From: Paragordius varius
Taxonomy: Eukaryota; Animalia; Nematomorpha
DNA: 64,000 nt
Direction of reading: 5' to 3'
Assembly (NCBI GenBank): GCA_964247055.1
Contig: OZ176054.1
Coordinates: 7,998,001-8,062,000 of the forward strand
Of the stretch, positions 4,200 through 54,070 are shown in pieces. Position numbers and translations under genes: made by a program. A model generated the notes under the pieces. The model was not told the DNA's origin, searched no databases, and worked only from the letters and a program-made list of their open reading frames with translations. How positions within the stretch are numbered: the first letter of the stretch is position 1; each line of letters opens with the position of its first letter.

Positions 4200-6740
4200 T
4201 CAAGAATTGAAATAATGGATACCTTCCAGACCATATGGTTGGAACAATTTAGATTTGGGTTGGTTTATATATTTTTGACTAGGTCGATTACCCCGATAAT
4301 CCCCATTGATAGTTTTATTGGCGAATATTTTATAATCCTTATTGATATTCCCATTGTAGGTAAATGTTAAATTATTTTTCCTATTATATGAATATAATAA
4401 CATAAATACTTATTGTGTTTTATTGAGTTCAATTCTTCATCTGAAGATATTTCATCTTCAGAAAAGTTCGAGTTAAAATTTTCAGGTTTCTTAATCTGTT
4501 TATCAAATAAATCAGATTCCCAAGCACCATATTCATCGTTTGTTATATGATCGGCATCTCCTTCAATAAATGCCAAAAATCTAATTAATAAATAAATATA
4601 TGTATCTTCAATATATTGATATATTAACGGCAAATATAATTTAATATAGGGTAATTATAAATCAAAATTGTATAAAATAAAAAACCTATTATAACTATGC
4701 ATTTTATGATCAAATTTTTTAAAACGGTTAATGGTAAAACATAATATAGATTTTCAATGGCAGTTTTAAAATGATTTTTGCGAAATTGTTATAGAATTGA
4801 AGGAATAACATAAATTTTTAAACTTAGAAAGGGCTCATGTTAAATATCATGTTTTTTTTATAATATAAGATAAATTACTCAATTTGTTAAATTTTAAAAT
4901 GTTGCTAGGCATAACTCCAAGATATCTTTATCAAAAAATGTCTGTTATAATTATGTGTGTACTTCAAAGGTTCTTTAAGTTTTTTTGCAACTTGCCACGG
5001 ACTACGTTGATAATTGGTTGTACAATAATCTCGAAGTTCTTTCAACTGTTTTTCCGTTTCTACCCGTCCTTGATCAATATATTCTTCTTCTGTTAACAAT
5101 TTTATGTGAGGGGGAAACTTTTTTCGGCTAGTAAATAATATGAATAAAATATATCAACCACCACAAAGCTAATGAATCAATATGTAATAAAAATCCAAGT
5201 TCTTAACTCTGGATACTATGAAAAAAAATAACACTATATTATATAATGTATCATCATAATACCCTTAATGCAAAAAATTCGTTTGGAAGAATAAAGCTAT
5301 AATGAAAAATATTTTCATCAAAAAAACGTTATATTATGTATATATATATAAGAGCATACTAAAATAATTTCAACGTTTCACCGCCCTTGTAAAGCGGATT
5401 AAAACGAGATCGCCATCGTGCCAAATTATCTAGGGTTATGAGTAGAAGAGGAATGATTATGCTTGTTTGAGCGTTATTACGAAAAGCATAGGCTAGGCCA
5501 CACAGTGATATTAAACGAATACCCCATTTTATTAGTGTGATAGATTTAATATCTTGAGGCGGTCCGCGCCAATAACAAATGGCAAAACTAATGAAACTAA
5601 CAAGTCCTATGTATGCAGCAACTCCCAACGGGTATGCCGTTATAATTTGACGTATGTTTTGCAAAATATGTTGTAAAAAATAAATTCCAAATGACCAGCC
5701 CCCGGCTAATATAAGGTACGTGGCTGTTTTACGCTATCAAAATAAAAAACTCTAATTTACAAAGAAAACGTTAAAAATGAATAAAAATCAGTTATAAATA
5801 AAATTAAATTAAGTAAAGGATTAATGCACAACTAGGCAATTTTTCTCTCATTATAGCTCAAGTGTTAAATCGTTCGTAAAGTTTGATACATTTTAAGTCC
5901 ATACACTTAAAAAAAGGAAATAAAGAGAGTCAAAACTGTATAATTTTTATATTAAGTTTTAATATAGTTATGCGCGTATAATAGAATATTGATAAGGTTA
6001 AAAAATTTAGTATGCTATAAGTTTAATTTATTTATATTGGTATTGTCGATAAATTCAAAACACTTTTAAGTTGAGGAAAAAAATATTTTGATTTTAATTT
6101 ACTTGTGGTATGAGTCGGCTCAAAATATATATTATAACAAGTATAGATGCAATATTTCCAAAAGATATCCCTGACATGTAGTAAAAACTTTCATTTCTAA
6201 ATTTATATAAGCTTTTACCTGGCTAAATGCGGAGCAAAAATATATAAGAGTATTGATATTAATGCCAGAGCCACTTTATTTTTATTGTAAATTTCAAAAT
6301 TAAATTTTATGGTATATGGATCTTTAGTATATATTCCAACGCAAGATAAATGAAAAGTATCCATAGAAATGGTGTTAAATCTCCATGGAAACAATTTAAA
6401 AAAATTTGATGCTTTATATTGATTGAGAAGGTCAGTTGAACTGTTACCCTTGTATATAACATAAGAGCTAGATTCATTAAAGTCCCATTGAAGCTAAATT
6501 TCAATGAAAAAATACTTTGGGGCAACTCAACAGATATTTAACACGAAAGGGTTTTCCCGTATAACAAAAAATATCTAATTGAGAAACAATCTTTGACAAA
6601 AATGATTGACTCATTCCAGACTTTAACCAATATACTATATTATAATATAGATAATAACCTTTATTTAGATCATTTGTAAAAATTTGATCTATTAAAAAGG
6701 CAACGATAAAAATTTTAAACCACATCATGTTAAAAGGCAT
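4200..6740 (-). CDS. NEMP1: Nuclear envelope integral membrane protein (NEMP1/TMEM194 family), about 480 aa
   Basis: Exons 6740-6659, 6634-6516, 6493-6219, 6196-6103, 5733-5375, 5127-4963, 4580-4410, 4380-4200. Signal peptide, IFCY, FYYMSGISFG, ILAGGWSFGIY, FAICYWRGP, and LLTEEEYIDQGRVETEKQLKELRDYC...SPW...FLAFIEG are NEMP family hallmarks. The 5375 donor and the first intron are less certain. Confidence 0.9.
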
Positions 6741-6894
6741 GAGCTGTATCAGCCGTTAGATCAGCATTCTCATGTATAGTTTTGGGTATAGTGGTAAAAA
6801 AATAGGCGATAATGTTAACATCTTTGAAATTTCCAAAGTATGTATTTTTTGAAAATTAATATATAACACTGCGTTTACAAAAAAATATCATGAT

Positions 6895-7915
6895 GAAATA
6901 AATATATTCTGATAGAAAAAATATAGGAATCTCATGGTACTTGTGGTTTTAGGGCTAATGTTTTAAGAAAGTTAACACAAGTTCTTCATATCAGAAAATG
7001 ACAAAAGCACATTTTTAATGAAAGTTAGATGCTTTCTTTGAAAAAACATCACTAAATTATCACTATCTATAAAAAGCAAAACAATATTTTTAAATCAAAA
7101 ATTTATGTGGTTTTTGCAAGTCCCATTTTTTGCTCTTCTAAAATGGGCTGGTTAGATTGCACGATAAATTTTAAATATATGTACAGTTTGATACCAATTA
7201 AAACGATTTTTAAACATTGCATTTTTTTCAAAAAAATATGCTACATACTTTATACTATTAGGCATTAAGGAAACGGGATATAAACGCTTTAAGACATACA
7301 ATTTTTCTAAATAATTATGAACATTTCATCGCATCAAATTTTAATTTAAAGCTTCTTTGCAATTAAATTTTGGTGAATCTTCGTAAAAAAACCTAAATTT
7401 TATTTAATATAATCTTGAAGATGAACGATTGTTTTAATCAAAATTCTGTGATAAAAATGTTAGAATAATCAAATCATATAGAAGTTATTATGTCTTAAAG
7501 CATTTACCATTTTATTATGTATTGAAATATAAAGTACCCTTTAAAAATTTGCAAAAATTAAATTTTTAATAAACTAATCATAAAAATATTTTTAGTTGTT
7601 ATCAAAATTTAGCATTTATTTAAAATTTTTATCGTGCAAAATCAGCATCTTCATGTTATCTTTAGGAAAACCAGCCCATTATATAAGAGCGGAAAAAATT
7701 TGGACTTTCGACCACAACAAAAAATTTTGTTTAAGAAATATGTTTTGATTTTTGGAGAGTTATGAGAACAAGTGATATTTTTGAAATGAAACATTTATAA
7801 TTCGCCAATATGCACAAATTTTGCCATCTGATACGGAGAACTTACCAAAAAAGTGTAAATAACTTTCCTAAAGCATATGAGAGCTTCAAAACCAAAAGCA
7901 CCGTAAAATTCCTAA
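6895..7915. mobile_element. Family C long-TIR (foldback-like) non-autonomous element, about 1 kb, diverged copy
   Basis: The two ends are inverse-similar over several hundred bp. Co-linear with 46190-47220, 34500-35158, 8530-8830 and 33340-33810. Boundaries approximate. Confidence 0.65.
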
Positions 7916-8830: not shown

Positions 8831-8832
8831 AG

Positions 8833-9344: not shown

Positions 9345-9348
9345 TTAA

Positions 9349-17347: not shown

Positions 17348-20300
17348 ATGACAAATAAAAATCATGTTGATTCCAGAATCACAGATGACAACCCAACGAG
17401 CCAATGTAATATGAGAAGATCCGTTCCTACCCTTATTATTAAGAGTAGAAAAAGTATTAGTCAAGTGAAAACATCTTTCTTACATTGTGATAATAATATA
17501 GTTAGGAGGTTGAAAACAACAAAGGCCCAAAATTGTGTTGAAACAACCAAAAATTATTATTCCGAAAACATATTAGGATTAAACTATTTCTCACCAACAG
17601 CGTTTGCGGACTCTGATAAAGGCACAATGAAATTCAATGATATAGAAATCCATTCGACTAGTTTGTCAAATAATCATTTTAATCTTCGCACACATACAAA
17701 TTATAATCCGATAAAAAGTTCGAGAAAAACCCACAAATCCACCATCATTACGAAATTTAATCCATACACCGCATTTATCTGCCTATTTTTACTTTCCCTA
17801 TTCACATGCCCTTTAACAGGTTGATTATTATTTTAGTTAGCGTTATATTTCTAGGATTACCAATTATTCAAATCTTATAATATCTAACTTATGATTATGA
17901 TTGAATTTTAATTTATAGCATTTCTCAATCATAAAGAAATTAATTGGAAAGTTTCTTAGCAGTACACGATTATTTTATGTTATCAATATTTATGGATATA
18001 ATGCTTAAGCACCGTTAAAATATTTTGTTTTTAGATTGTTAATATATTTTCTATGATTCTAGCCAAATCTCTTTAATTTTCTATTAAATATTTAATATTC
18101 GGACCTTTAACATGCAAATTGTTTTTAACAACCGCGTCAAGCCGTGTAATTTTTTAAATAGTAACACAGATACGATATAAAATTAATTGATCATAATTTT
18201 TATTTTTTTATTTAATGTGTATATAATTATACCTCATCTGGTTTTGAATAAATTTTGATTTTTTCTTTACTGTTTCTAAGTGACCATATGCATTTTTTTA
18301 TCATCTCATCATTATGGATAATAAAAACATTAAGTTAACTAATAAAAACAGAGGTTCAAGGAGGTTTCTTCTTTTTATCATAGTGATCGCAAAAAATTAT
18401 AATCATAAAATATTTTTATATATTTGTATCATTGATAAGTAGAAAATGATAAACTTAGTTTTAGAGCGATAAGCCAATTCGAGAATTTATTTTTTCTTTG
18501 AATGGTTATGCAAATGACAATTTGGGTTTACGACACGGTTGAGTTTAAAACTGGTTTTTTGCTCTTAAAACATAACACTTTATAGAGATATTATTCAAAT
18601 TTATATGCAAAATCAAATAAATACGATTTTGTCCCTATTCAAATTCATTTACATTTTTCTGATTCATTACCGTTTAATATAGAGTGAACATAGTGATTTA
18701 AAGTAAAATTGTTTAGAATGTAATAATTTTTGGTTATTAGTGGGTCACTTTACAAATGAGATCAGGAGTGTTCATACAAATACCTTCGCGGACCACATTT
18801 TTGACTAAAAAATCTGGCGTGGCATACGGAAAATATATATAAGCATAATAAATATTTTTTACATAAAACTGGTAAAAAAATTTACGACGACAATATTACT
18901 ATATTTATTTCACTAGTTTTTGCTAGTTCGTTGTCAATATTTGGGAAGACTCGTCTGAAATTTGTTTAAGCAATGCCAATTTTACTAAAGTTTTGCATAG
19001 CATGTTTTTTGTAAATTATTGAATATCTTACAGTAGCACATGTCATAAAACAGTATTAGTCCATAAAAGAACAAAAATTTTTTAACAAAACAAGGGGTTA
19101 TTATGGATATGTTATATACAACTAGGTTTGTTTTATTAAAAAAACATGGGCTAATAATGTTTTATGCAATACGCTACTGTATTTGGTAATTTTCAAAAAT
19201 TTTCTGCGATCTCAGTATGGAAAACCCCTAATATAAATGCATGATAAATTAGCGGACCGAGTGTTGAAAACCCCTAATATAAATGCATGATAAATTATTA
19301 TATACGATCCTAAATTTATGTATTTTATCATAGTTTTGAGTCAACAACCCAAACCAGAAGATGATTTACCCATTTCTGTGGAAGCACCACAAGCCGCAGT
19401 TCCAACTAACACTCCGGCTCCCCCACAAGCTAATGCCCCCAATGCGGCCCCAGTTGGGGATGTTTCCGCCCCAATAATATCGGAACCACCGATTAACGTT
19501 AAGCTTGATCAATGTAGCGGTCGGACTGCCACTGTAAAATGGGACCCGCCAGCGAAAACAGATGTCTTGAAATATCTGGTCTTGGGTCACGTTGATGGAA
19601 CACCTGATCATGAACTTGACCGCCTAGGTTTTAAAAAAATTTGATATATTCATAATTGTTCTGCTAGAGATATAATCTGGAGTTTGTCTTTAAAATTTAC
19701 GATGAATTATACTGTTTCATCTTAATCAAACCCATTTATATGAATTATAGCATAGTTAGGGCGATATTTCAAAAAGATTTTTTGTTGTTTTTACGATTAT
19801 TGTTAATTTGATTATTTTTAGGATTGGAATAGAGGCGTTGTTTGCAATATATTTTTATTTTTTTGTATTTTTGACGGGTTATGATGTATGATGATAAACG
19901 AAAAATATTTAATTTGATATTTTACGATCATTGGTATTAATGTATATTGTGTATCGAAAGGTATACAATTCTCATAGAAGAGTTTTTTTATTACAACATT
20001 TCAATGAGCCTAATATTTTTTAAAACTATTACCACATTCTAAGGTTTACAATATAATCAATATTGGTCTTTGATATTTTTTGACAATTTCAATTACTCAT
20101 TATTCTTATTTAGGCGAAGCACCAGGAAGCGAGAATATGTTAAGTGTAGATATAAAACCGGGAGGGAAATATCGCTTTAAAGTGGCCACAGTTAATCGCG
20201 ATGAATACATTAGTGTGCCGAGTGCAGCTACCGAGGTATGCAGTAGTCCTGGGGACGTGCCAGCCCATCACCCGTTAAACGTTGTGGGAAAAGGAACTGA

Positions 20301-23300
20301 TAATAACAACATGGTCATTTCATGGGAAGTATAATTACTAACATTAGCGCTAAAAATTAACCTAATCTCTCTCACTCTCTCTCATATAAATTTTAAATTA
20401 TAAATGTCTAAGTCTAATAGTTTTTTTTGGCTTTTAAGTGCTTAAAAAATAAATGTAAATGGGTTTAGGTATTTAAACGATAGCGCCCTTTTATATTTTT
20501 ACACCGTATGAATACCGGTTTATAATTGGGCCAAACTAATATTATAAATGTGCACAAAAAGGCAAAAGTTAAATATTTTGTAGTAAACTCGACTTTTTTT
20601 AAAATGAATCTAAGTCTTTCATAATAAAATATTTGTTAGTTTTAGGTTTCATGCTTTCAAATCCAATTATGATTCAATAATCTAAATTAGTAAAACAATT
20701 TAACAAATATCCTTCATTTATTTGTATAGCCCCTTACGCACAATGAATTAAACGGTCCCGATTTTCATTACAAAGTTGAATACAAACCGAGAGACGAAAC
20801 AGAATGGAAAAGTGCCGAAGTCCGAAATCCGGAAGAAAATACCTACACTATTAAAGGTTTGATAAAATTTTGATATTGCAATATATAAATATAAACAAAC
20901 ATGCGATAAAAATTAAACATCATTCATATATCGTTAATTTTTGGTTTGATTAGATATTGGAAAATATACACCCTACGATATTAAAGTCAGTGCTTACAAT
21001 AGTTTTGGGCCTGCAAACGGGGAACCATCTCAAGCTGTTGGTTTTTCTGGCGAAGATAGTAATATTTTATAATTACTATTTATTGCTATGCAAAATTTAG
21101 CGAAACTATGATATTTGATTAATAAACGCATATTTATATTTGCTTTAGTTCCTACGGCTAAGGTTGAGAATTTACAATTACAAGAAATTATTGATGGTAA
21201 GCGAGCTCGAATATCTTGGTCCCCGGTTAACCCGAACGAAATGAATGGCCCCTTAGTGGGATACAAAGTAAATTTCATGAAATTACTTAACATTTAGAAA
21301 TTAATGTATGCAATTTTAGTTAAATTCTAACTTATAATAAGTCTAAATTTGAATCTAAATATCTACCGTAAAGACTCAAGAAACATTGCAAAATATCTTT
21401 TTTTGTTTTTAAAGAAGGAAGAATGTAAAATAACCATGCCTTTTCTTGAATCTTCCAATTATTTCGGAAAATTTGTTGATTTTAAAACCGCTTAATTATA
21501 AAAAATTATTTATTTAATGCCAACACAAAAATAAGTACAAGAAAACTAATATTTTCTTATATCGAGCTGCCTTTGCCACATAGTACTTTATTTTATCCAA
21601 TTAGTCTTTTTTCTACAATAGATTCGAAGTTATACTACCTCATACGAAGGAGATAATTTGACGGAAACAATTGTACCTCCCCGTGCCACGAATGCTTTGA
21701 TTGATATTCTTAGACCAAACACTGAGAATGTCGTCAAAATCGCAGCCTACAACAATAAGTTTGATGGGCCTGAAAGTGAAGAGTTGGTTATTAGTACACC
21801 TGAAGCTGGTAATTTTTAATAATAAGCACATAAATTCTCTTTTTTATATTTATTTTTTGGAATCATAGAATAGGTTTAATTTGTATTCAATGATACCTTT
21901 TACTAATTTTTATCGTTTATATGAAATACTTAATCAAAGTATTTACATTTATGTTGGCCAATACACATTTTTGGCCAATTGGCATTACAGTACTCAAATA
22001 ATGTAATAAAGATTGAAAATAATAGAAATGTGCATATATTTTAATTTTATCAAAACTTGTTTATTACATTTAAATTTAACAACAAAATTAAAAATAAATA
22101 CTGCCAATAATTAAAATTATAGATTTCACAATCTCAGATTATATAATTAAAAATTTTAAAAATCTTTTTTATTCTATATAGTTCCAGGAAAACCACAAAA
22201 CTTTAAAGCCATGGCACTTGGCCCCACAAACATTCGATTCTCATGGTCTCAACCCATAGAAAAAAATGGCGTCATCAAGGGATACAGAGTCATGTACGCC
22301 CCAGGTAATTTATATTAAATAGGGTTAGATGAATTTTTAATTTGCCAAAAATATGGTTTTTGGTTTAATTTAAAAATTTTTTAAGTGTAATTATTAAATA
22401 TTCCCTTTTTTTGTAGTGGATCAAGCTGGAAATCCATTGGCACCCGAACAAGAAGCTAGGGTTGAGCCTTTGTCACAAGAAGCTTTTATTTCAAGTGAAT
22501 ATGGATAAATTTATAATTTGTTTGCAAAATTATATTTTTGCGTAAGAAGATGTTTTTTAAAAAAATATTTTATTGATATACAAAGGATTACAACCAGAAT
22601 CAAACTATAAAGCTAATATTCGAGCAGCAACATCAGTTGGATATGGAGAGCCTGCTGAGGCTATGACAAGAACTACTCGACCTGGAGGTATTCGTTTTTA
22701 ATCAAATGTTGAAAAGAATACAAAATTAATAATAATGACCTAAAATATATAAAATTTTTATATTATTGATAATCAATTGAATTAGACATATATCCAATTT
22801 TTAAGAATGTTTCATCCTTTATATTTTATATTTAGCCCCAGATAAACCTGATTTTGATGTATCAGTTGTCGATGGAGGTTTCAATATAACTGTGAAACCA
22901 AGTGCATTCCCTGGGGCCTTTTACCATGTTCTTTACAAAAAAACAGGTAAGATAGGATTTTATCAAATTTTAACTAATAATATAATTCTCCTGGACATAA
23001 TTCTATTAGTACACTTTTTATAGATGGTCTTATTCATGTACTTTCAAACATACCAATCCAAAATTTATAATCGCTTTATATCCATTATCGTTCTATTTTA
23101 AGCCGGGTGCGTTTTATTTAACCAAAAATGTTAAGAATATATCTTATTATAATTAACTTCTCTTACAACAATAATTGTCTTATCTTTACAGGCGAAAATT
23201 GGACCTCGACAAAACTCCAATCCTTTGATCGTTCCAGAATGATTCGAAACGTTAGCGAGAACACGGCCTATCAAATTCGCGTGAAAGCAGTAAATGATGA

Positions 23301-37252: not shown

Positions 37253-39572
37253 ATGAACCCAATTCACGAGATATTATATGATGTAACTTTAAAATAATCA
37301 TTCAAGCATTTAAATATTAAACATATTCTCTATCTAGGTGATGATAAAATTTCTAAGAATATTATTATTTTTAATAGTTTTTTACGTTTGGGAGTATTTT
37401 AATTTTTGAAATTTAGATAAATCCCATTATTATAGACTGTAATGATGTTGAATCTGACCACAAACAACTTTGGATATTATTTGTTGATAAAATTTGCCAA
37501 AAATATAACATTGATTATGATATACTTTCAATTTCAGATATCATAGATGCTCAAAAATTGATTACCGATAAACATTTGCACATCGTAATATTTATTTTAT
37601 TTCAGCTCTTTTTAAATGCAGAAAAGTTAAAATATATTGGTCATCATCCCTTGTCTATGATTTCAAGTTTGGGCAACAGAGTAAAATTTAATATTTATTT
37701 TAGATAAATATCTCAACCATATTCATATACGAGACGAATATCAATATAGTATTTGAATATTTCACTCCATTTGTAATAAATGACTCGTTGCCAAATCGGG
37801 GTTTAGTTTACCTTATAATTTTATAGAGGAAATGAAATTAATTTTAACTCAATACTTGACTGAAATGAGTATTGGTATTGATAGTTCGCAAATGGCCAAT
37901 GTCATAAATATTATTTTAAGTTTATATTATCCAATTTGTAGGAATTCAGCCAAATTGATTCAATTGGTAAAATCTTATTAAAAAATTTATAGGCTGAAGC
38001 TATTATGTGTCCGCAAAAAGAAGAAGGTTACTCAAAATATAGTTTATTGTATAATTCATTTTATATTTTAATTTGATTTTTTTTAATTATCGCACATTAT
38101 CTCATTATAACTCCAAATTAATTAGTCTGATATCGAACGATTTAATTTTTAACCATATATTTTGGCAGTAATTGTTGCATGTTAGAGAAAACCTGTCATT
38201 AATAGCTAATAATTAAAAAATTTATATTTTTTAATAAGGATTATTTCTAACTAAGGTTAAATTAAAATGGTAATAAAATAATTGGAGAACTATATAATGT
38301 CCATAATATATTTTCAACCTTAGAATATTCGATCAATAGAGAATTCAAAAATTTATTGTCCCTATATCACCGCTTTATTTCTCCCACAAATGATCCGAAA
38401 TCTCCGTGTAACATTTATATATATTTATATATGTTATAAGACCATAAAAATATTTAATTGCATTTTAACATAGGATAAATTTTTGTATATATATATATAT
38501 ATATAAATATAGCACGGGACATTGATTTCAAATCAGATTATTTATTAAAGCTACCCTTAACACACAAATTTATCTTGTTGTCGGCTTTTATTGCATCATT
38601 CCAAACAAATACTCAATCTATTACGGTAATTTGTGTTTTTTAAAACGCTTGTTTTTCCCGGCATATTTTTTATTGCTAATATATTATTATAAATTGGTTA
38701 TATTTATAAAGTTTTGTTCTTAAATTGAGTTAATATGATATTTTATCGATTATATTTAATCATATTATAAATATAGGACACATATAAAAGCAAGAAAAAA
38801 CGCAAGCAAAACAAAACCAAAAACAAAGGTTCTATCGAATCCGAAAAATTGCTGTTTCCAGCCACGTTTACAACTAATCGCTTGATAACAGTCTTCAGAT
38901 TTGTTTCACGCGGATGGCAAATACATTCCAATTATGAATTTTCATTTGGTTTTCAGACAGCGGTAGATCTTTAATTGTTATTTAAAATTTTTGTGGACAA
39001 TTAAAAACCTATCAATTAACTTTAAAACAATAACAAAAGACAAAAATTTCAAAGCTCTTGTGCCATTAAAATTGAAAAATCTCTTATTTTAAACTTTTGA
39101 TGCTAATTTTTTAGTTTCGTAAAACCAAATATAAAATTGGGAAATTCAAATACAATTTATTATATGGAACACAAATTTTTGATATTTATTTTACAAACGT
39201 TTGTATAATTTTAATTTAATTTTGCAGGCCATTTGAATTTTGTTTATTTAAGTTGCATATAAAAGTATTATTAAATATATAAATAATGGATTTGAAAATA
39301 TTACAACAGAATAATATAGCTTTAAGTATAGTTATTTGCAAATTAAGTTTACGATAACCACCAAATACATTACATTTCATATTTAACTATGTTAGGTCAA
39401 GTCCTTGATTAATCATAAATATATTGTTGACGTTTCAACAACCGCCATAACCAAATTTAATTGCACAATGACTTTGAATGAAGCCAATGCGATAGCCAAG
39501 TTTTTTTATTAAATTTTATCTAACGTGTGTAGGAGTATCGGATTCGATTTGAATGGTATTATGCAAGTTTAG
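37253..39572 (+). CDS. ORC5: Origin recognition complex subunit 5 (about 385 aa), absent from the ORF track
   Basis: Exons 37253-37282, 37307-37393, 37417-37584, 37606-37680, 37704-37800, 37827-37966, 37993-about 38030, 38324-38407, 38513-38625, 38777-38962, 39396-39499, 39533-39572 (TAG). Motifs in ORC5 order: IIIDC, HILFLNAEKL, FTPFVI, INIILSLYYPICRNSAKL, LYHRFIS, LPLTHKFILLSAFIASF, LLFPATFTTNRLITVF, KFNCTMTLNEANAIAKSIGFDL. Confidence 0.88.
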
Positions 39573-39704
39573 TCCTCATACCAAATTTTTTTACATATAT
39601 ATTATTAATAAAGCATTAATTTATTCATAATTGCAAACCATTTAGATAAATCATTATAAGATTTTAACTTAATACGTTCTTTTTAACTCTGAGATTTCTT
39701 TCAT

Positions 39705-42700
39705 TCACTTTTTAAGTATGTTCAGCAATACGGCATCATCGTCATCGGGGTATTGGAATTCAGTTTTAAAATCAAGTCCACCACCACTGTTTGCTTTAGT
39801 TCCCGACATATCTACAAAATAAAAATATTTATCATTGTTTGTTAAATTTTGGGGTCCCGTTTGTACCTTTTTATGCTGCATCGGTTAGAATAAATTATAA
39901 GCCTTCTAAATTTTTTGACAGTTTGGGATTCAATATAATACAATCATGCCGAAAACCAAACATTTAATTATCAGTATTTTGCCTATAGTTTTTATCATAA
40001 GAGAAAACGCCTAAAATCTTACCATATATTTGTATGATATTAAAATAAAATAACCCAATAGTTGATATCTAAAAAGTACAACCGAAATGCTGAAAATCCA
40101 GCGTTTAACCCAACCCAGTTTTTTTTTACATTTCCCCCTGCCCATTAATGTTTTTTTTGGAATTCCGAACCGTCCTCACCCTAATTAAATGTGTTCCGCC
40201 CCCTTAAACCTGACACACTATTAAGTATCCAAAATTCCCATATACTAATGTTTGGCCCATTGTTAATATCAGGGCTATGTTTTGAAGCCATGGCTAATTT
40301 CTGTAACAATTCTTGACCGGCAATAGGTGGTTCATAAGGAGCATCTTCAGTATCAAAAGGAGCGCCAAACAAATCATTACCCGTTGTTAGGCCCCTATTC
40401 TTGTCCATACAATCAAATTTTATTTGTTGTTCTTGAATTTCTGGTGATAGCGCCTATGCCACATAAATTGGATTTATATTTCAGTAAATGAAATTATACA
40501 GACAAAATGTAAAGATTAAAAGACAAATATTTTTTTTGAAAAAAAACCCATACTTTTTCAAACCTTGTTGTTTTTCTATATATATGGTATGAATTATATA
40601 AATAGTATATTATCAATTTATTTCTGTCACCCCCATTGAGCCAAAAAGTATGAGTTATTATTTAATAAATCCAAATTTTAAAATAGGATTATTTCAAAAA
40701 ATATTTGTCTTTTTATTTTTACATTTCGTATGTATAATTTCAACTGTAAAAATGGATTTTTCGGGATAGTTTTCAAATCCAGGGCTACATCAAATTTAAA
40801 TATTTTAAAAATACCAGAAACAAATTAAATATAGATTCCTATGGCCTTTTCCTTATTAATTATATTATAATGTATTAGTGTGAAAATCCCCATTTCACAT
40901 GTCCAAATCTTCGTTAAATCTTTAAAATAGCAATTAGAAAATTGATGATTTTAATCAAAATTTTGCTTTTGTTTCATTTAAATTTCAGAGCCATACAAAT
41001 TTTGGATTCAAAAGTTGACGAATTGTGGCAAAAATAATTTTTATGGTAATATAAATTAAAATAACTAGTCATGAAAACACCCAATATAATTGATTTTAAA
41101 CTATTTGAATAATGAAGTGTTAAGTTTTTCCACTAATCAAATATTAGTTTATTATAATATAATGTAATGTTATTATAAACGTTATCTATTTGCAATATGT
41201 AAAAATGTCAACCACGTAACAACGATATAAGGAAATAAAAACAAATTTAATACCTGATAATTTATAATAATCAAACATTTTTCATTTCTAAAAATAAATC
41301 AAACCTGATCCATGACCGATATAAATGGTTTCTCCGAATCCGTTAAGGGGGGAGGACCTTTTAATCGTTTAACTGGTCCCTGCATTTCACCCATACCAGG
41401 CTCCATGGCTTAAAATAAATAAAGTACATATATTTTTTCCAAATATTGTCCATTTAAATACATCTTTTTAATATATACCTTTATTATTAGAGTTTGGACC
41501 ACGTTTAAATTTACGGGCCTCATCTGCTTTGCGTTTAGCCTCAGCAGCTTGTTCAGCATAAATTTTTCGTTTTACAGATATTACAGCTAAAAAATTTGAC
41601 AAAAAAATGTATAGATGGATATATATAAGATAGTTTAATCAACCATTAGTTTAATTCCCAAATATTAGGTTTAAAATATTATTGTGTTTTTTTTATGTGT
41701 AATTTTTTTCAAAATTTAAAATAGTTTTATCGACCAAATCTATATATTTTTATTATTATCGCCCATTTGTGTTTGATACACAAGTTTAAATGTAAAATAT
41801 TTACATGTATAAATTGACTGTAATTAGTTAAACTATACCTGATATTTTCCGATATGAGAGATAAAACAACACACAAAATACCAAAAATGATATCACAAAC
41901 ACAACAATAAATTTGGTAAAGGATTCTTTTGTAACTAAAGTAAAAAAATTATGAAATAAAATTATTTTATAACTTTTTAATTTTTGAAAGAATATAAACA
42001 AAATATATAATTTAATAATTGCCTTACTGAAATATTGGGCAAAAGGTCCTAAGGCAGGATCTATATGTTTCAAATAAATAAATATCGTTTAAGATTAATC
42101 TTTAAATAAAAATAATGAATTATTATATTTGTCCCTTTTTTTCTTTTATATAGATGGAATTTAGATAAATTAAAAACTTATAACATAAATATTCAATAAT
42201 ATAAAAATGCCCTTACAATAAATAACAGAGTCAAAAAATCATTATTGGGATATAAAACCATCATATAAAATACCATTTACATATACTTTAATTGATTTAC
42301 AAAAATATGATTATAAAATATTTTTTTAACAAACCTGGGATTATCAATTGAACCGGGTTTGGAAAATATTGACCTAACTCATTCATTCCTATGCACAAAA
42401 AGTAACCGTTATAATTGATGGTCAAATTATCCAGTAATAAGTAATTGCGTTCATAGAATGTCAAATTATTTTCCATTGTTTTGGTTGTTGTAATCTGAGG
42501 CGTCCATGCATCATTTTGATTTATATCATGATAGGTTATGTACTTTATATTAGACGTTACATCTATGTCTTGATTGTGTACACCTAAAAATATTTATTGA
42601 TAAAGTTATTATTATTGGTGTAAAAAATGTTAATGTTTAAATTATTTTAACCTGGTTGAATATTAATGGGACGTTTAGAATATATCCAACGTATAACAGG

Positions 42701-45700
42701 TAACGGGTATCCATTAAATTGACACGTAAGATTTAATGAAGTCTCAGTTTTTAGAGTGATTTGACCTTCGGCTGATAAATGTTGAAGGCTTACAGGAGCT
42801 ACGTATAAAAGCATTTTTTTTTCAAATTTTACTAAAAAAATTTATTTGTTTGTGTAAATTTTTTTACCCAATATATTGGGTATAGTGGCATCGACTAGCG
42901 TTTCATTTTCAAAGGTGTAAACACTTTTGCAGACAATGGAGGTACCAATATATCTTGCTGGATTTTCCATACTTATTAAACTTTGAATCTTTTCTCCCAG
43001 GGTTTTATTTATATGGCCCTCGGTTTCACGCATCGCACCAGTTTTATCTTTATATAGCCTAAATAAAATATATTTTAAAAGTTTTCGTTCCACAATGCGT
43101 CAAAAAGGGCGAAAAAAATGCAAAACTTTAAGATCTTATTAGATAGAAGAGTTACATAAAACTCATACACTTAACTTATAATATGGGATAGTCAAGTAAA
43201 TAATAAAATTTATTTTTTTCATATTATACCGAAAATATGTTGACTAATATTATATAAAAACTCATTTTTGGGGTAAAATGAGCTTACTTGAGTAATTTTA
43301 GTTTGCGATAATATCAACTTTGAATTTCCCAGAAAGTTATATGCTATGTGGGAAATTATAGAAATAATTTTTATTTTTTTTGAAATATACTGAAAATAAA
43401 AACTTATTTCGTGTCTTTCTGAATTATGTGGACAGTAAGTTATAAAATTAGGCATTTGTGATTTCAAACTATAAAATAAAGGAAATTTCAAAATTTAATA
43501 TAGTCCTTTTTTACGCGAATAATTCCATTTAAAATTTTGAAATATTATATTACAAGTTTTTTGCCCTTTTGGATCTAAAAAAATACAGTCGTTAAAAGCA
43601 TTAATAAACACACTTAAAGGTTGATTATCACCAATAGCGTGTTAAATTATAGATTAAAAAATTGTCCATTTTATAGTATTTTACATGATATGTAAATATT
43701 TTTTATATTATAAATTAGATATTATTTTACATCTAAAACGAATACATTTTAGTTTTAAAAAAAATCTAAGCATGATAAGTTTTAGCCCATTCATGTATGA
43801 CTTGTTCCACAAAAACTTTTAAAAAATAATTATAAATTTTAACTGTCAAAATATCCTATAAAAACATTATTTCAAAAAATATTTATAATTTAACCACAGA
43901 ATTTTTGGACGCATATATCCTTCTTTTAGCTCACAACCAAAAGATATTGGTTTGTTATACAAGTTATGTTCTATATGCCGTTGAGTAATGTAAAGATTGG
44001 GAAAAGATGGTTTTTCTAAAATAATACAATATAAAAATATAAATCAATAGATATAACCTATTATATACAGTAATAATATCAAAAAGATCATCATCATAAT
44101 TATAAATTTTAATTTAAAAAATGCTAAAAAAATTAATTATAATATATATGTTGGGCAATACATAACGTATTATGTTGTCAAATTATAAACATTTTTTGTA
44201 ATATAACAACTTGAAATAATGATTTTAATTAAGCATAAAAAAGTTCTTATATTGTCAAATTTTTAACATATGCCTAACATTTTTTGTAATGTAATTATTT
44301 GAAATTATGATTTTAAGGTTGATTAGAAATCTTATACAAAAAACTATTTCACACGGCTAATTTAATTAGATTAAAACTTAGGGGCAAAAACTAGATATCA
44401 TGGATATAGAGCAAAGAAAAAAAAGGAAACATACTATAGACAGCAAATTTTAGGGTGTGGGAACCCATGATTGATGCCTTTTTCCCACAAACATTTTCGT
44501 AGATGCGTTTTCTATCAATGATTTGAAGCATTAATTCACTACTATTCATGTTTAATTGGGGTGAAAAGATGGTAAAAATAAGTTGTTTAGGATCAGTATC
44601 CGTTAGTCTAGCCCCATAAGTTGAATCTTGAAACGTTTGTTCAGCATATTTTACGCCATTTATGAACCATATAGAGGAGTAATCATCCGTGGTATAATTT
44701 TGTAAAATGTTATAGGTTATTTGTGATGCATGGTCTTGCAACATATCTCGAACGCTTGGTGGTTTTGTCATTAGAATAGTTCCTAAAAAGTTTCATGTAA
44801 TTAATACGAATTTGGGAATGAATTAATAAAGTAAGTTTTTGTCCCTAATAATTTGTAATTATTAACATAAAGGGGGGTAGGAATACGGATAATGATTGAT
44901 ATTATGGTTAAATATATAGTCTAATATATCTATTTCAACTAGCAAACATATTGTTATTTAATTCGGCCCTTATAAAAATATTATAAAATAAATTTAACTC
45001 TATCATCTTAGTAAAAGTATTTAACTACTTATTAAAAAATAATAAGTAAATACTAATAAAAAAGCGGATTAATTAAAAGTCATGTTTATAGATAATAATA
45101 TGCTAGCACAACCAACCTTATTCAAGATAAATTATAGGGCTCGAAAGAATAAAAGGTATGAATGCAAATATTATAGTAAGACTAATGTACAAATTGGTTA
45201 AAAGATTATGTATCTTTTGATAGATTTAGGGTCACAAAAAAATTCAACACATCTCGAAAATAATCAAAAATAGTTAAGAGTGAAACTCATTAGTTTATAT
45301 GCTTGGTACCAATATCTATTTTAAAAAGCATAAAATTGCAAAATCAAATATAAAGGAGGTTTTAAATTAGAAAAATCAGAAATTACAGTGGATATTAGTC
45401 TTAGGTTCATATTTTTTGTAAATATAAATCATCTCATATAGCACTGCATGAGTGAACAATTAATTGATATTATATCTTATAATTATGACAATTTACCTTA
45501 AACCAAAACTTTACTCATTAAATAAATCTGAGCAATGCATCTATTGTACATATAAATGATTAAATCTTAGTGGTTTTATTTAGAATTTTAGATACTACTA
45601 CCGCTATAGATTCTGTAACGAATTATATAATTCAATTTATTAAAGGTAAACCGTTTTTTCCTTTTTCTGCTTGGCAGAGTATATAATTGAAGCTTTTAAC

Positions 45701-47563
45701 TTTAAAAGCTCAGACCAAGATATATTATCAAAGAAAATCCTAGCGCTTTCAGTTATACTTCCAATCTGATACATGTGAAACTTATACATCACCAGTACAT
45801 GTTCTACTTAAAAATACGCTCCAGGGTCGTAGAAACAGAAGTATCAATATATAAATCAGTAACTTAATTTTTGGAATAAAAAGTAACCAAAAATGTTGTT
45901 CTTTTTCCCGAAATTAGTAATCTAACAACATTGTTAGCAATATGTTCAACGAAATTTGCCGAAAATTTAAAATAGGAATATATATAGCTCTTGCACTCAT
46001 TATAAGTTGTCTACTTTATAAAGAAAAATATCGAGTCATAATAATTTTTATTGAATTGTTACTAAATGCATATTGAGTTTCAATGCAATATTTTTTAATA
46101 TTTGATTTTTAACGTGTTAAAAACTCCCAATATCATAAAAATGCATCATATTTAAATCTTAAAAGGCTTTTAACACTGTTAACTTGATGAAATATATATA
46201 ATAGATAATGTATTAGGATTATGGTGCCTTTGGTTTTGACCGTTACGAGTAATTTACACTTTTGTGGTGAGTGCTCCATATAAGAAAATGATAAAATTTG
46301 CGTACATATCTTTAAATTAAATTTTTTTGGCCAAAGCTAATGCTTCATTCCAAAAATTATCACCTAAAAATACTATAACCTACATTTAAAAAGCAAAACA
46401 ATATTTTCAAAATATTATAATTTTTAGATGTGGACTCCGAAAGTCCCGAATTAATTCGCTCTTGTCAAATGGGTCCCCCTAAAATAAACGCAAATATGCC
46501 TGGATTGGGCGATAAAAATTTTATATGCTAAATTTTATAAACTTAAAATAACTTTTTTCAAAAAATTATTTTAAGCCAAATTTTGTTGAACCGTTTTTCA
46601 TACTATTTTGAGGCATGATGGAAACGGTATATAAACGTTCTATATAATTCGATCATGCTAAACATTTCCATCACATCAGAATTTTCATAAAAATATTCAT
46701 TCGTCTTCAAACTTAATATAAATTTTGTTTTTTTACAAAACTCACCAATAAATGCAAACAAAGTTTTAAAAATGCAATAATTATGTTCAGCATCATCGAA
46801 TTATATAGAAGAAGAGTTTTCATAATATCTTAAAGCGTTTTAAACCGTATACGTCTCCAATAGTATGAAGTACGCTTTAAAAAAAATTTGTTAAAAATCA
46901 AATTTTTGAAAAATGTATTTAATAAAAATTTTTTTATTATATTGAAAATAGCCCATTTAAGAAGAGCGAAAAAATTTGGAATGAGGCCACATTAAAAAAT
47001 TAAAATATTTTAAAAATATTTTTGCTTATATGGAGTTAATATTTTTAGTGATATTTTTTGGAAAAATTTAGCTAAAAAAATATTTAAAAAATATGCGCAA
47101 ATTTTTCCATTTTCCGATATGGATCACCACAAAAGTGTAAACTTTCTTAATTCACGTAACAACCAAAACCAAAGGCACTATGATGATCCTGGTACATTTT
47201 AGTATCAGATTTTATATATTTCAAATTATTGTTTTATACCCCCCCCCCCCCCCCCCCCCGGAATTAGGATGCAGTGTAATAGGGTGAGGTACTGTATTGA
47301 TATAAATCATTATCTTATACATATATATTATATGATGCATATATAATAAATAAAAATTAAAACCACAATCTGATTCATCAGATTGATCAGTTTGGCCTTC
47401 ATTGCAACAGTCAACGATATCGTCGCATTTTTTAGCTATTTCGATACATATTTTTGAGAATTTGCACATAAATCCATCACAAGACACATTTGGAAGCGCT
47501 TGTAAATTATTAAAAAAACCTTAATATTATCCAAATCTTACATAGAAATAAAATCACTAACAT
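39705..47563 (-). CDS. Type I membrane protein: signal peptide, LDLa, three Ig-like domains, TM, long cytoplasmic tail
   Basis: Exons 47563-47542, 47498-47364 (CDGFMC..CI..CDDIVDCC..DQSDESDC), 44782-44435, 44015-43895, 43058-42868 (GCELKEGYMRPKILW...IVCKS), 42798-42652, 42583-42335 (LTCQFNGYPLPVIRW...NGYFLCIGMNELG), 42060-42028, 41934-41839 (TM FIVVFVISFLVFCVLFYLSY), 41586-41479, 41408-41305, 40453-about 40245, then uncertain exons ending 39812-39705. Phases check through exon 12. Confidence 0.8.
40482..40747. mobile_element. Family H Tigger/pogo-like MITE (intronic)
   Basis: Inverted repeats of about 60-70 bp, CAGT..GAAATTATACAGACAAAATGTAAA / TTTACATTTCGTATGTATAATTTCAACTG-TA. Same family as 61577-61865. 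Confidence 0.6.
46190..47220. mobile_element. Family C long-TIR element, best-preserved copy (intron 2 of the LDLa-Ig gene)
   Basis: tgtattaggattatggtgcctttggttttg..tttacacttttgtggtga mirrors tcaccacaaaagtgtaaa..caaaaccaaaggcactatgatgatcctggtaca. Imperfect inverted similarity extends about 300 bp inward. Confidence 0.75.
47239..47259. repeat. C21 homopolymer (G21 on the transcribed strand)
   Basis: 21 consecutive C counted in the sequence. Confidence 0.95.
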
Positions 47564-47648
47564 AAATCATTACAAATTTAAATAGCGAGGTAGAACTGTC
47601 AAATGCTGGAATGAATGTCCGACACGGTCGATCAGGAAAATCCTAAGG
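47564..47648. promoter_or_regulatory. Putative bidirectional promoter (85 bp between divergent start codons)
   Basis: Lies between the LDLa-Ig ATG (47563, -) and the ABHD14 ATG (47649, +); locally GC-richer. Function is inferred from position. Confidence 0.5.
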
Positions 47649-48834
47649 ATGAAACCCATTAGAGTAAATTATTATTTTATCATTTAGATAATTATTGTAT
47701 GCTCGATTTTGGCCATTATCATATCATTGATATATTTTCTATACCAAAGTTCTACAGAAATGGAATCATCACCAAAAGATTTACCAACAAAAGTTTTGAT
47801 TTATTTAACATTAGCATCATAAGGAATATTTTACATTGCGACATTTAGATGTATTCAAGTACAACATTCCACCATATAAATACGATAATAAATCTTCCGT
47901 ATTTAAAACAATGGAATTAAATATAGCTGATAACTGCAAAATTAATGCATTATATCACTTGAACAACAATTCGGAAAACGATGTGCCAGTTTTAATATTT
48001 TTGCATGGTCGTTCCTTTTCTTCTAAAATATGGTTAGAAACAGGCATATTACCAACTTTTTCAAACTTGGGCTTTGATATTTTTGCCCTTGATCTCCCAG
48101 GTTTTGGGATGTCTAAATGTTTACCCAAAGACTACCCATTTAGCAATAGGTTAAAAGAGGCATTAACCCGTAATTATAAAAACGAAACTTCACCATCATC
48201 CCTATACAATAGCAAATCATATGCAGAAATTAAAAATGCCATTTTATTGGATCAAATTGTTAAAACGATTGGTCTTAACTATGGTCACACAAAAAAGTTT
48301 GTTTTAATCAGTCCATCTATGAGTGGAAGTTATAGTATACCATATCTCATGTACTATACGGATATTAATTTTTCCCATGAAATATTTGATGATAATGATA
48401 ATAATGAACATACTTACAAACCAAAAAATGACAAACGGTTTTACGCTTCAACGGATGTAGAAGCAAATTCCATGGAGATGATTGGTTACGCTCCTATTGC
48501 TCCAACCAATTTTGATTCCTTTGATTTCAATGATTATAAACGTTTACGAATACCAACCCTAATCACTTACGGCGAGTCAGATGTGAGATTAGGGATGGAA
48601 TCATTACGGTTTTTAGAACAAATCCCCACAAGCGTTATAGTGCCTATCCCCAATGCTGGACACGCTTGTTACATTGACCAAACGGGTATTTGGTCTCAAG
48701 TGTTTTATAACTTTCTTTTGGCAATCGTACCTAGCCATCTTTCTAGCATTATTATTGGAAACAATTCTCACTCTTCATCTCAATCAATTAGCGAGCCTAC
48801 AATTCCAATCAAAGGTTCGGTTGTTCGAACATAA
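47649..48834 (+). CDS. ABHD14: Alpha/beta hydrolase ABHD14 family with N-terminal membrane anchor (ABHD14A-like)
   Basis: Exons 47649-47663, 47688-47792, 47824-48834 (introns 24 and 31 nt, both removing in-frame stops). IFLHGRSFSSKIW, DLPGFGMS, nucleophile LISPSMSG, YGESD and NAGHACYID give the Ser/Asp/His triad. TM IIIVCSILAIIISLIYFLY. Two Asn/Asp/Ser-rich insertions. Confidence 0.9.
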
Positions 48835-49152: not shown

Positions 49153-50855
49153 TTAGTCTTCAACCAAAAATTTGCGTTTTTCATGTTCATTCACCATATC
49201 GGTATAGCGCTTTTCAAAATCAAGTTTGGCGAGCTGAGAGGCTTCATACATTTTAACTAATTTAATATTATCTGAAACTAATCGATTGCACAAATCGTGA
49301 TCTGGCCCAAGCTCCTTAGACTCATTCATTTTTTCTAAATACGGCACATTACAGGTAGGACAAAATAAATTTTTGCATGCGACATTTGTTGTTGGTGACC
49401 CTGATAAATTTTCATTTTTGGTTATCAATTTTGTACGACGTTCTTCTAACATGACTTTTATTTTTTCTTCATAGAGATTTATCATTTCCTTTTTTTCGCT
49501 GACAATATTGTTGTATAAACGCTTAATATCTTCCAGATCCTTTTGTGACTTAGCCTTTTCTAAAGCACGCTCCTGTTTTTCACATTCTAATGCTTTATTC
49601 GCTTTTTCTAAATCAGTGTCCAAATCTTTGATACGATTGTCCATTTTAAAGACTTTGTTTTTAAGTAGATCCAATTGCCTGATTAAGCTAAATAAGGGGA
49701 GCGATATATTTTTAAAAAATAATATGGCTAAGCTCTTGTTAAATTTATATATTGTAAATTTAATTGAATATATTTAAATATGTATAACCGACTGCGTTTA
49801 TACCAAAATGTTGTACATATATATATTTATATATACATATACGAAATATATATGTGAAAACCCCAAGTCAAATGGTTGTGTCGTACTGATGTGTGCTAAC
49901 AAGCACAATAGTCTGCGATTGCTACTGACTTACGGTATCGCATTGAATTTTGTTTATAACTATTTCACGGAGTTTAAAAATTGTTAATATATTATTGATA
50001 TATATTAGTGATTTTGAGACTTGTCCAATTTCAAACTATTTTTAACCAGATTATAAATTTTAATTGTACTATATACTCATTTTTTTGTAATTCAAGTTTG
50101 GCTATAATATCATGCTCATCAGATATTTGCTCATCTTTCTGTTTTAATACCCTTTCTAAATTGTTGTGAGATTCTTGCAGACGAATAAATTTTGCCACCA
50201 TAATAGATTGTCTTTCTCCATTATCATTTTTATTGGTATTATATGCACCGATATTTTTATTACTGTCCCACTCATTCTTTATTTGATCATCTGGGATCCA
50301 TTTATACATGGATTTTTGTCTTTGTGACATGTTTCTAAAACCAAAAATATCTGGAGATTGATTGTCTTTCATATCCTTTGATGTTTGACTATCAGATTTG
50401 GTGTGTTGAAGCCTTGTTAATTTATCATTAATCGATTCTCGCACAATATTTTCTTTGTAATCATTGACGGTAAAAACGGATAATACTTCTTTTCCAATCG
50501 TTTTTAGTGTGGGATCCTTGGCCAAAGCTGTATTTGATATCCCAGTTTGCCCATAATAATTTAAATTTGTTATAGATTTGGTTGATTCGTTATTGTATTT
50601 TTGAAATTGAGGTTCGACATTATCTCTTTGGTTAAATACATTCTGTTTATCTATGAAATTTTGTCTACTCCTCCTTTCATGGCTTAAATAGTCATCTTGT
50701 ATTTCTTCTAAAATCTTTTTATAGCATTGTCCACATGGTGGATCTATTTCATTTTTTCCTTCTCTCTGGGCCGATTTTAATTCCAACAACGCATTATTTA
50801 ATGGTGATAATGAGCGTGAACTCACAGTTTTTTTCACATCGATAAAGGCTGACAT
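49153..50855 (-). CDS. Orphan coiled-coil protein (about 437 aa)
   Basis: Two long exons, 50855-50077 and 49687-49153, joined in phase 2. Heptad-rich E/K/L stretch from LERVLKQKDEQ to EERRTKL, and CxxC pairs (CGQC, CPTC). Family not recognised. Confidence 0.75.
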
Positions 50856-51892: not shown

Positions 51893-53573
51893 CTTCCATG
51901 ATATTTTGGGGTAGATCCTAGAGCGATTTGAAATTAATATCTTAAAAAGTATTTCAGGTATTAACTTCGATTCGAATTGGGGTATCTGAATACCCCAGAC
52001 TATATTTAAATATATTTTTAAAAAACTACTGAAGGAAACTGTCCCAACTTAAATTTATGCTTCTATCCTAATACAAATTTAAATAAGCCAAAATATTTAA
52101 ATAAAAGTTTGTTTTGAAAAAAAAGTTCCATGTCAAACTACTTCGACGCCATTTTTATATTAATTGCAAAATATCGTATTCATTTAATTTTAAAGATAAT
52201 AAAGCTAATTTCTAATTTAAATTAAATCTAACATTGATAGAAATAGAAAAAAATGGTTTATTTTGCATTATTTTTCAATTTAGCCGATGCACACATGTTA
52301 CGTTGTCTAATTTTTACCATTGAGTTTTTACATCAAAATATGTAATATCAAATATTTTTGAATAAAGTTTTTATACATTACGGTTTATTAACACTTCGAT
52401 TCAATTTGGGGTATCTAAATACCCCAGACTATATTAAAGTTAAAATTTAAAAAAAACTACTGAAGGAAACCGTCCAAATTTAAATTTATGCTTCTATCCT
52501 AATAAAAATTATATAAATAAGCTAAAATATCTTAATAAAATTTTGTCTTGAAAAAAGTTCCATCTCAAACTACTTCGACGCCATTTTTATTTTACAAAAT
52601 TTTTGCAAAATATCGTCTTCATTTAATATTAAGGGTAAAATTAAAGCCAAATTTTTATTTAAATTACATCTACCGTCGATAAAAATAGAAAAAGCGGTTT
52701 ATTTTGTATTATTTTTCAATTTTACCATTGCACACATATCACGTTGTCTAGATTTCAGCCTTTCAGTTTTAGCTTAAAATTAGTAATATCAAGTATTTTT
52801 GAATAATTTTTTTATATATTTCGGTTTATTAATGTTATATAAGTGCATTTTGCCTAGGCTTCGATCCCTTTCATATTTTTTAAAGAATTTAATTTTAAAC
52901 AGGCCTGGGGTATTTAACTACCCCAATTTGAATCGAAGGACTAAAATGAATGTATTGTATCAAGGTGTTAATGATATATAAGTGCAAAATTTTGCCATGG
53001 TTTTGATTCCTTCTATATTTTTTAAAGTATTTTACTTTAAACAGGCATCCAACTACCCCAATTTAAAAAGAAGGACTGAAATGAATGTGTTGCATCCAAG
53101 TGTTAAGCCGAATTTTAAAATATGCTTTATGCAACCTTTTAGGCGCATAATACAATTTTTTAAAAAATATAAAGTTGTAAAAAAATATCACTCAAATTTG
53201 GCCTCAATTTTTTTATATTTCTTAAATCGCTGATGCAACAGGCAAATTAATGTATATTTAGTTAGAAAATGTAAACAATCAACTTTTAAAGGCTTTCAGG
53301 CAAAATTTATCAGAAAAAATAGATATATTTGGTTTTTAATATCAGCCATCAATCGTGTTTTGGAGCTGTCCAAATTTTAGACTCTATAAGTCACAAAATT
53401 GTAAAAAAATATAACTTTTTTTTATCTAAAACATGAGAGCAATGTTGGATAAATAGTTTTTAACAAAAATAACTTTAAAAAGCGTCATTAACAAAATTTA
53501 GCTCTGGGGTATAAAACTAGCCCAAAAGATAAACTAGGAAAAAAAGTGAAAGGTAAAAGATTGTTAACTTTCC
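51893..53573. mobile_element. Nested piggyBac-like cluster: B (reverse) > A > A
   Basis: B start 51893-51960; TTAA; outer A 51965-52387; TTAA; inner A 52392-52967; TTAA; rest of outer A to 53102; TTAA; B resumes 53107-53573; TTAA. Confidence 0.85.
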
Positions 53574-53618
53574 GAGACTATACATTTAAAATTTGATATA
53601 AAACATCTGTGGCGAATT

Positions 53619-54070
53619 ATGTCGTTAACAACTCATGTTACTGATTCTTCTATCGTTAAAGCTAAATCAAAATTTCCTTCAGGCATCGGATATTATCCTG
53701 CTGAGTATGATCCAAAAATTCATGGACCGTATTATCCCTGGCGAAATTACGGCAAAAGTTGCTCCTTTTTTATTTTTAGCTGATATAAAATTTATGGATT
53801 TAAAAGTTGGTGATTTATGGAATTGGGTTGGAAGAAGATCATTTCATCCACATGCTATTTATAGCGTTCTCATTAGAAGTTTAAGAAATATAATTAAAGG
53901 ATTTCAACACTATAAATATAGATGGGTTGATACAAAGGTTGGTTGTGCGGCCCCTATGTTTCATGTCTTATTTATCACGATGGGTTTAAGTTATTGTCTT
54001 TTTTTCAAGCGATACTGTATAATTATTTTAATAATTGATAGATTATGAAAGACGAAGAAAATATCATTGA
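53619..54070 (+). CDS. ATP5MF: Mitochondrial ATP synthase subunit f (invertebrate type)
   Basis: Exons 53619-53757, 53780-53878, 53900-54016, 54042-54070 (TGA). YPAEYDPKIHGPYYPWRNYGK, VGDLWNWVGRR and C-terminal RRRKYH match invertebrate subunit f. Introns are 22, 21 and 25 nt. Confidence 0.92.

Follow-up and report, generated by a model that had tools for sequence, protein, structure and literature searches.

Genes and probable tiny introns of the window

The 64,000-nucleotide (nt) stretch analyzed here (contig OZ176054.1 of the Paragordius varius assembly GCA_964247055.1, positions 7,998,001 to 8,062,000; hereafter "the window") carries four genes, NEMP, ORC5, ABHD14 and ATP5MF, whose coding sequences are interrupted by segments of 21-33 nt that we regard as probable spliceosomal introns. 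The gene models and the tiny introns are as follows, in window coordinates, with protein lengths in amino acids (aa).

4200..6725, minus strand: NEMP-family gene, 8 exons, 481 aa model, Pfam NEMP on exons 4-6
6635..6658, minus strand: NEMP intron 1, 24 nt, newly added; GT..AG, pure A/T interior, in frame without a stop
6494..6515, minus strand: NEMP intron 2, 22 nt; common to all parses shown; if retained, the protein ends after 66 aa
6197..6218, minus strand: NEMP intron 3, 22 nt (31 nt with the alternative acceptor); retention ends the protein at 154 aa
4381..4409, minus strand: NEMP intron 7, 29 nt, in the unconserved tail; retention gives 435 aa, not 481; the weakest case
37253..39572, plus strand: ORC5-like gene, 12 exons, 390 aa model; open frame, weak Pfam ORC5_C
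37283..37306, plus strand: ORC5 intron 1, 24 nt; contains a stop
37394..37416, plus strand: ORC5 intron 2, 23 nt; GT-AG, open frame, fixed in parses
37585..37605, plus strand: ORC5 intron 3, 21 nt; frame-preserving and stop-free, also picked by the ab initio parse
37681..37703, plus strand: ORC5 intron 4, 23 nt; GT-AG, open frame, fixed in parses
37801..37826, plus strand: ORC5 intron 5, 26 nt; or 23 nt, if placed at 37806-37828
37967..37992, plus strand: ORC5 intron 6, 26 nt; GT-AG, open frame
39500..39532, plus strand: ORC5 intron 11, 33 nt (or 36); stop and CTAAC branch-like motif inside
47649..48834, plus strand: ABHD14A-like gene, 3 exons; top match the Gordionus ABHD14A-like protein
47664..47687, plus strand: ABHD14 intron 1, 24 nt; follows codon 5 in phase 0; stop inside
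47793..47814, plus strand: ABHD14 intron 2, likeliest 22 nt; 31 nt (to 47823) if AAG serves as acceptor
53619..54070, plus strand: ATP5MF (ATP synthase subunit f), 4 exons, 127 aa; Pfam WRW exon by exon, PDB homologues
53758..53779, plus strand: ATP5MF intron 1, 22 nt; only internal A 8 nt from the 3' end
53879..53899, plus strand: ATP5MF intron 2, 21 nt; frame-preserving and stop-free, a 7-residue insertion if retained
54017..54041, plus strand: ATP5MF intron 3, 25 nt; GT-AG, open frame, from parse enumeration

On the coding strand (minus for NEMP, plus for ORC5, ABHD14 and ATP5MF) all 16 tiny segments begin with GT and end with AG, and 15 of them are shorter than 30 nt. Their interiors contain about 9% G+C, against 22% in long introns, 35% in coding exons and 26.7% in the window. 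An earlier sequence-only reading, made without database searches, had listed 15 such segments; all 15 exist and are GT-AG on the strand of their gene, and the 10 in NEMP and ORC5 lie exactly where it placed them. It overlooked the 24-nt NEMP intron at 6635-6658, and it gave ABHD14 intron 2 a length of 31 nt, while the length of 22 nt, given by the first in-frame acceptor (TAG), is likelier than that given by the second (AAG). It also observed correctly that ORC5 is absent from the list of open reading frames (ORFs), but the cause lies in exons of only 10-62 codons and not in intron length as such.

When the tiny and the long introns are removed, complete frames from ATG to stop are obtained for ORC5 (390 aa), NEMP (481 aa), ABHD14 (376 or 379 aa) and ATP5MF (127 aa), in agreement with the earlier claim that the removal of these segments restores the frames. 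That most segments make splicing obligatory holds for 13/16, whose retention shifts the frame or adds a stop; the other three are in frame without a stop, so that their splicing is not forced by the frame. Altogether, 35 introns were modelled in five genes: the 16 tiny ones (median 23.5 nt) and 19 of ordinary length (90-1514 nt), which occur alongside the tiny ones in the same genes and in one neighbour. The neighbour, a multi-FN3 (neuroglian/L1-like) gene on the plus strand (17348-24475, 748 open codons), contains 12 modelled introns, all of 90-1514 nt and none tiny. It is in the housekeeping genes that the tiny introns of the window cluster.

Tests of chance, assembly error and DNA elimination

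Since GT..AG pairs alone are frequent in this DNA, full read-through was used as the test statistic, and for ORC5, NEMP and ATP5MF each the null sequences were allowed as many A/T-rich GT-AG cuts of 20-33 nt as the gene itself. The three real genes read through completely, whereas none of 500 dinucleotide shuffles and none of the 797-838 non-coding ATGs per gene did so. This bears on the view that the segments are products of artefact or decay, i.e. assembly indels or pseudogene frameshifts patched by chance GT-AG pairs in A/T-rich DNA. Such a view draws on the abundance of chance pairs, on the strong divergence of ORC5 and on the alternatives that exist for several boundaries: upon enumeration of the parses, ORC5 introns 1, 2 and 4 and NEMP intron 2 were constant across all parses shown, and a nearby alternative boundary was found for ORC5 introns 5 and 11, NEMP intron 3 and ABHD14 intron 2. 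It is opposed by the empty nulls, by the fact that four housekeeping genes are alike affected, by the exact abutment of the ATP5MF exons in the family profile and the coincidence of the ABHD14 positions with introns of Gordionus (see below), and by the data from independent DNA. In the independent sample X3, which is about 2% divergent, a contig over 53615-54033 differs by 7 substitutions and has no gap, and thus the three ATP5MF segments are genomic rather than an assembly error; resequencing indels that would open the frame without splicing, which the sequence-only reading had named as a possible refutation, are not seen in ATP5MF in this sample. The artefactual explanation is refuted for ATP5MF and ABHD14, and for the whole set we consider it highly improbable.

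Sequencing runs containing this DNA come from six studies, none of them recorded as RNA. Runs X11-X15, which have the same species label and are presumed to be RNA, have no sampled words in common with it (0.00). Runs X5, X6 and X7, labelled as three other organisms, contain it at low depth and with near-identical sequence, as expected if they represent hosts or environmental samples carrying the parasite. The same kind of data can be confronted with the idea that the segments are cut from somatic DNA, in the manner of the internal eliminated sequences of Paramecium, which include a 26-30 bp class. The similarity in size and A/T richness would agree with this idea, and a rare joined form could have been missed, as contig data lose minor variants and the listing of joints is dominated by a repeat. 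However, the segments end in GT..AG and not in TA..TA, they are oriented with transcription on both strands, and the deep DNA contig across ATP5MF is unjoined, which makes DNA elimination a most improbable explanation.

Homology and shared intron positions

In ATP5MF, exon 1 matches the Pfam WRW profile up to position 25, exon 2 matches positions 27-58 and exon 3 from about position 60, and the split codons correspond to positions 26 and 59. The exons therefore abut in the profile and there is no space for intervening segments. This includes the in-frame 21-mer, the retention of which would introduce 7 extra residues at that point in comparison to the PDB subunit f chains shown and would spread 77 residues over 70 profile positions. 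Removal of intron 3 gives the terminal RKYH, which we take to be typical of subunit f. The ATP5MF pieces matched nothing in a large protein database or in metagenome contigs, and neither did the NEMP pieces in metagenome contigs, these queries being short and thus uninformative on absence. The Pfam NEMP matches are colinear, with exons 4, 5 and 6 at profile positions 34-62, 63-166 and 178-238, so that the exon after NEMP intron 3 is the one that matches 34-62. In ORC5, weak but colinear matches to Pfam ORC5_C were found for exons 9 (E 0.007) and 10 (E 0.0004). The first NEMP junctions presumably agree with those of vertebrate genes, as presumably do the phases of the ORC5 exons and several of their lengths (75, 49 and 113 nt); we treat both as leads rather than tests.

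That the positions are inherited is indicated by ABHD14. Its top match is the ABHD14A-like protein of Gordionus sp. m RMFG-2023 (Gordionus montsenyensis, GCA_954871325.2), with 204 bits against 101 for the runner-up. The two genes are alike in their three exons, intron positions and phases, and they differ in intron length; G+C content is nearly the same in the window (26.7%) and in Gordionus (26.93%). Gordionus intron 1, of 45 nt, follows codon 5 in phase 0, exactly at the position of the 24-nt intron of the window; its intron 2, of 3115 nt and also in phase 0, uses the same donor position as the 22-nt (or 31-nt) intron; and exon 2 is 105 nt long in both. In a maximum-likelihood tree, calculated for this one gene with thin taxon sampling and no identified dicyemid or myxozoan sequence, the window protein is the sister of the Gordionus one with support of 100/100, on a long shared branch. 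Long-branch attraction may be the cause of this grouping, but it is made less likely by the N-terminus and exon layout that the window and Gordionus have in common. On this single gene a hairworm source is very probable, and identity of about 42% indicates a different hairworm, distant from Gordionus. None of the other genes of the window was found inside the Gordionus ABHD14 locus of 27 kb.

The catalytic part of ABHD14 is encoded, in the window as in Gordionus, by a single long exon with extra insertions (47824-48834 in the window; Gordionus locus L001:15934-16887). Two mayfly ABHD14 genes have three to four introns spread along the gene, which points to intron loss alongside intron shrinkage in the hairworm ABHD14. 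The first introns of the mayfly genes are about 7 residues off, in a poorly alignable stretch, and speak neither for nor against a shared position.

Splice signals and the putative mechanism of removal

The 5' ends of the tiny introns always carry A or T at +3 and show no GTAAGT consensus; at the 3' end, T is found at -5 in 13/16 and at -3 in 13/16. An A occurs at -7 in 10 of the 16 (p=0.036) and at -7 or -8 in 13 (p=0.06), both values being uncorrected. The long introns of the same genes have end signals similar to those of the tiny ones. Neither the U12-type 5' signal RTATCCTT nor the U12-type branch sequence TCCTTAAC is present in any of the 16 tiny introns.

Another route considered is the non-spliceosomal removal from RNA by IRE1 and tRNA ligase, as for the introns of XBP1 and HAC1, whose length of 20-26 nt is in a range similar to that observed here. 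It would hardly explain why all 16 segments end in GT..AG, and the orthologous ABHD14 positions carry ordinary long introns. Moreover, no twin stem-loops of the IRE1 type, with CNG/CNG cleavage motifs, were found in the tiny segments, and the folding z-scores were between -0.4 and +0.9 in 8 of the 9 tested, with one at -2.3. We regard this route, too, as very unlikely indeed.

We propose instead that the tiny segments are removed by the major spliceosome through intron definition. Little sequence information would be used: GTW at the donor and, in most cases, TNTAG at the acceptor. A patch rich in A, some 7-8 nt before the 3' end, would serve as the branch site, with a lariat loop of about 14-18 nt and a tail of about 7 nt. 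ATP5MF intron 1, in which the sole internal A is at -8, fits the proposed branch site. The human minimum from donor to branch is about 46-55 nt (PMC11291888). The distance proposed here is far below that limit, so that U1 and U2 are probably unable to occupy the intron simultaneously and some relief of steric crowding would be needed. The crowding would probably be eased by sequential occupancy by U1 and U2, or by locally trimmed branching or activation factors, as proposed for Stentor, rather than by a wholesale minimal spliceosome. Nonsense-mediated decay could clear most retention errors, given that 13/16 tiny introns shift the frame or add a stop.

The sequence-only reading went further and inferred a modified, minimal spliceosome. 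In a fuller form of this view the introns, although real, would need a substantially reduced or specialized spliceosome, in which U2AF, SF1, SF3b or activation factors are missing or truncated, or even a second, dedicated complex. This supposition is compatible with the introns being genuine, and it can point to the donor-to-branch distance of about 14-18 nt compared with the human value (PMC11291888), to the altered branching factors of Stentor (PMC9505925) and to the two length classes among the 35 modelled introns, none of which is between 34 and 89 nt long. However, an unmodelled intron with its donor at 42867, in the membrane-protein gene at about 39700-47520 on the minus strand, can be joined in frame to either of two acceptors, for a length of 36 or 69 nt, which leaves the gap between the classes tentative. 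The same genes also contain ordinary introns whose ends carry similar signals, and the window has no Rfam hit to small nuclear RNAs (snRNAs) and no splicing-factor gene. In addition, according to a 2026 survey, myxozoans with equally short introns (22-27 nt) retain the branch-pairing region of U2 and both U2AF1 and U2AF2 (PMC13644364), and Stentor retains all its snRNAs (PMC9505925), so that precedent does not call for such a change. On balance, the minimal spliceosome is not supported, and we consider a substantially specialized spliceosome rather unlikely.

Weighing of the evidence

Several observations speak against the tiny segments being introns of a hairworm, or at least fail to help. 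The four sequencing runs that were mapped (X3, X5, X6 and X7) are all DNA-like, with intergenic repeats covered, and show no spliced joint among those listed, as expected of DNA; splicing of the tiny segments is thus inferred from sequence. An underpowered ab initio codon-model parse placed many splice sites where the gene models have them, yet for ORC5 it scored 13.2, below the null maximum of 14.4. The N-terminal ORC5 exons, which flank six of the tiny introns, matched nothing in Pfam, PDB, the Atlas or protein representatives; the short exon 3-4 piece, uninformative on absence, had no match among 1.84 billion representatives or in the Atlas and only a chance match in PDB, and a single-sequence AlphaFold model of the ORC5 piece reached a pLDDT (predicted local distance difference test) of 57. 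The last NEMP intron has no homology support from the tools, its model resting on the open frame. The enrichment of the putative branch A is marginal, several positions having been tested. Finally, the grouping with hairworms rests on one protein of about 40% identity with thin sampling.

Nonetheless, the restored frames, the nulls, the contiguity of ATP5MF in the family profile and the ABHD14 positions held in common with Gordionus together make it very probable that these are spliceosomal introns in an animal, as the sequence-only reading had proposed. We put the probability at roughly 0.88 that the tiny segments are genuine GT-AG (U2-type) spliceosomal introns of a hairworm, shrunk to 21-33 nt at inherited positions.

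Other features of the window

The membrane-protein gene mentioned above weakly matches the LDL-receptor class A domain and also shows Ig-like domains and a transmembrane stretch. A candidate intron of 17 nt near 41300 was rejected, as its donor opens into a long intron. The remaining features are as follows.

28400-31860, minus strand: multi-exon gene for a low-complexity, possibly secreted protein; no Pfam match
35578-36362, 51959-53106 and 63633-63971: high-copy dispersed repeat with internal duplications of about 430-440 nt and inverted copies
47239-47260: about 21 consecutive C within an intron of the minus-strand gene at that site, unusual for 27% G+C DNA
49153-49674 and 50031-50855, minus strand: two long ORFs; no Pfam match
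54594-55600, plus strand: decayed fragment, with stops, of a non-LTR (non-long-terminal-repeat) reverse transcriptase; Pfam RVT_1, E 3e-18

For the dispersed repeat, the summed contig depth exceeds that of single-copy DNA by a factor of thousands, and its appearance would fit a non-autonomous DNA transposon. The ORF at 49153-49674 contains a coiled-coil-like stretch followed by a Cys/His pattern that resembles a zinc finger or RING.

Relation to known short-intron systems

The window bears on the minimal intron length within reach of an animal spliceosome. Introns shorter than 30 nt were long held to be absent (PMC4675715). The 2026 survey of 51 genomes reports such introns in myxobolids and Dicyema and in no other animal, with median lengths of 27 bp in Henneguya salminicola and 22 bp in Thelohanellus kitauei and Myxobolus rasmusseni (PMC13644364). 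In Dicyema sp. the median is also 27 bp, with two thirds of the introns below 30 bp (PMC6543705, citing Ogino et al. 2010). The sequence-only reading had listed ciliates, nucleomorphs and dicyemids as the known cases and left out the myxobolid myxozoans, described in September 2026 (PMC13644364). A literature search that covered few subscription journals found no paper on short introns in Nematomorpha. This kind of intron is already known, and the hairworm lineage appears to be new; judged by the window sequence, hairworms would be the third animal group with introns below 30 nt.

If this is true, such introns would have arisen a third time, once more in a parasite, though here with no obvious compaction of the genome. 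Gordionus, with longer introns at the same sites, would offer a natural before-and-after pair for changed splicing factors. A more far-reaching version of this scenario, which we put forward only tentatively and consider doubtful, is that a separate class of spliceosomal introns, of 21-33 nt, arose independently in the hairworm lineage, the first reported in moulting animals, in a repeat-rich and non-compact genome that keeps ordinary introns and with Gordionus retaining 45 nt at an orthologous site; the spliceosome might then treat the two length classes differently, owing to lineage-specific changes of branching or activation factors, which a comparison between hairworm genera could pinpoint. 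There is also a practical side: such genes would be fragmented by gene finders that accept no intron below 30-40 nt, and the broken models could perhaps inflate estimates of gene loss in hairworms.

Among the known systems, the myxobolids (PMC13644364) resemble the window in being parasitic animals with GT-AG introns below 30 nt at conserved positions, a 5' signal close to GTa, a weak A patch before the AG and clustering in the same genes. They differ in that tiny introns make up only 16 of the 35 modelled in the window, which lies in repeat-rich DNA, and in that the myxobolid introns are known from long RNA reads, whereas those of the window are known from DNA. As the window is probably ecdysozoan (Nematomorpha), the origin of its introns would be independent of the myxobolid ones. 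Dicyemids, parasitic bilaterians like the hairworms, share the size class and a conserved exon-intron structure; they belong, however, to a different phylum, and the ABHD14 of the window groups with Gordionus. At the 3' end the window retains a modest T bias, whereas D. japonicum is reported to have only the AG (PMC13644364). Stentor coeruleus, with introns of 15-16 nt, retains all snRNAs and shows only local changes of branching factors (PMC9505925). It resembles the window in its A/U-rich GU-AG introns, in a branch A near the 3' end and in a small lariat. On the other hand, Stentor is unicellular, all its introns are tiny and its branch position is almost fixed, whereas the window carries introns of 21-33 nt beside ordinary ones.

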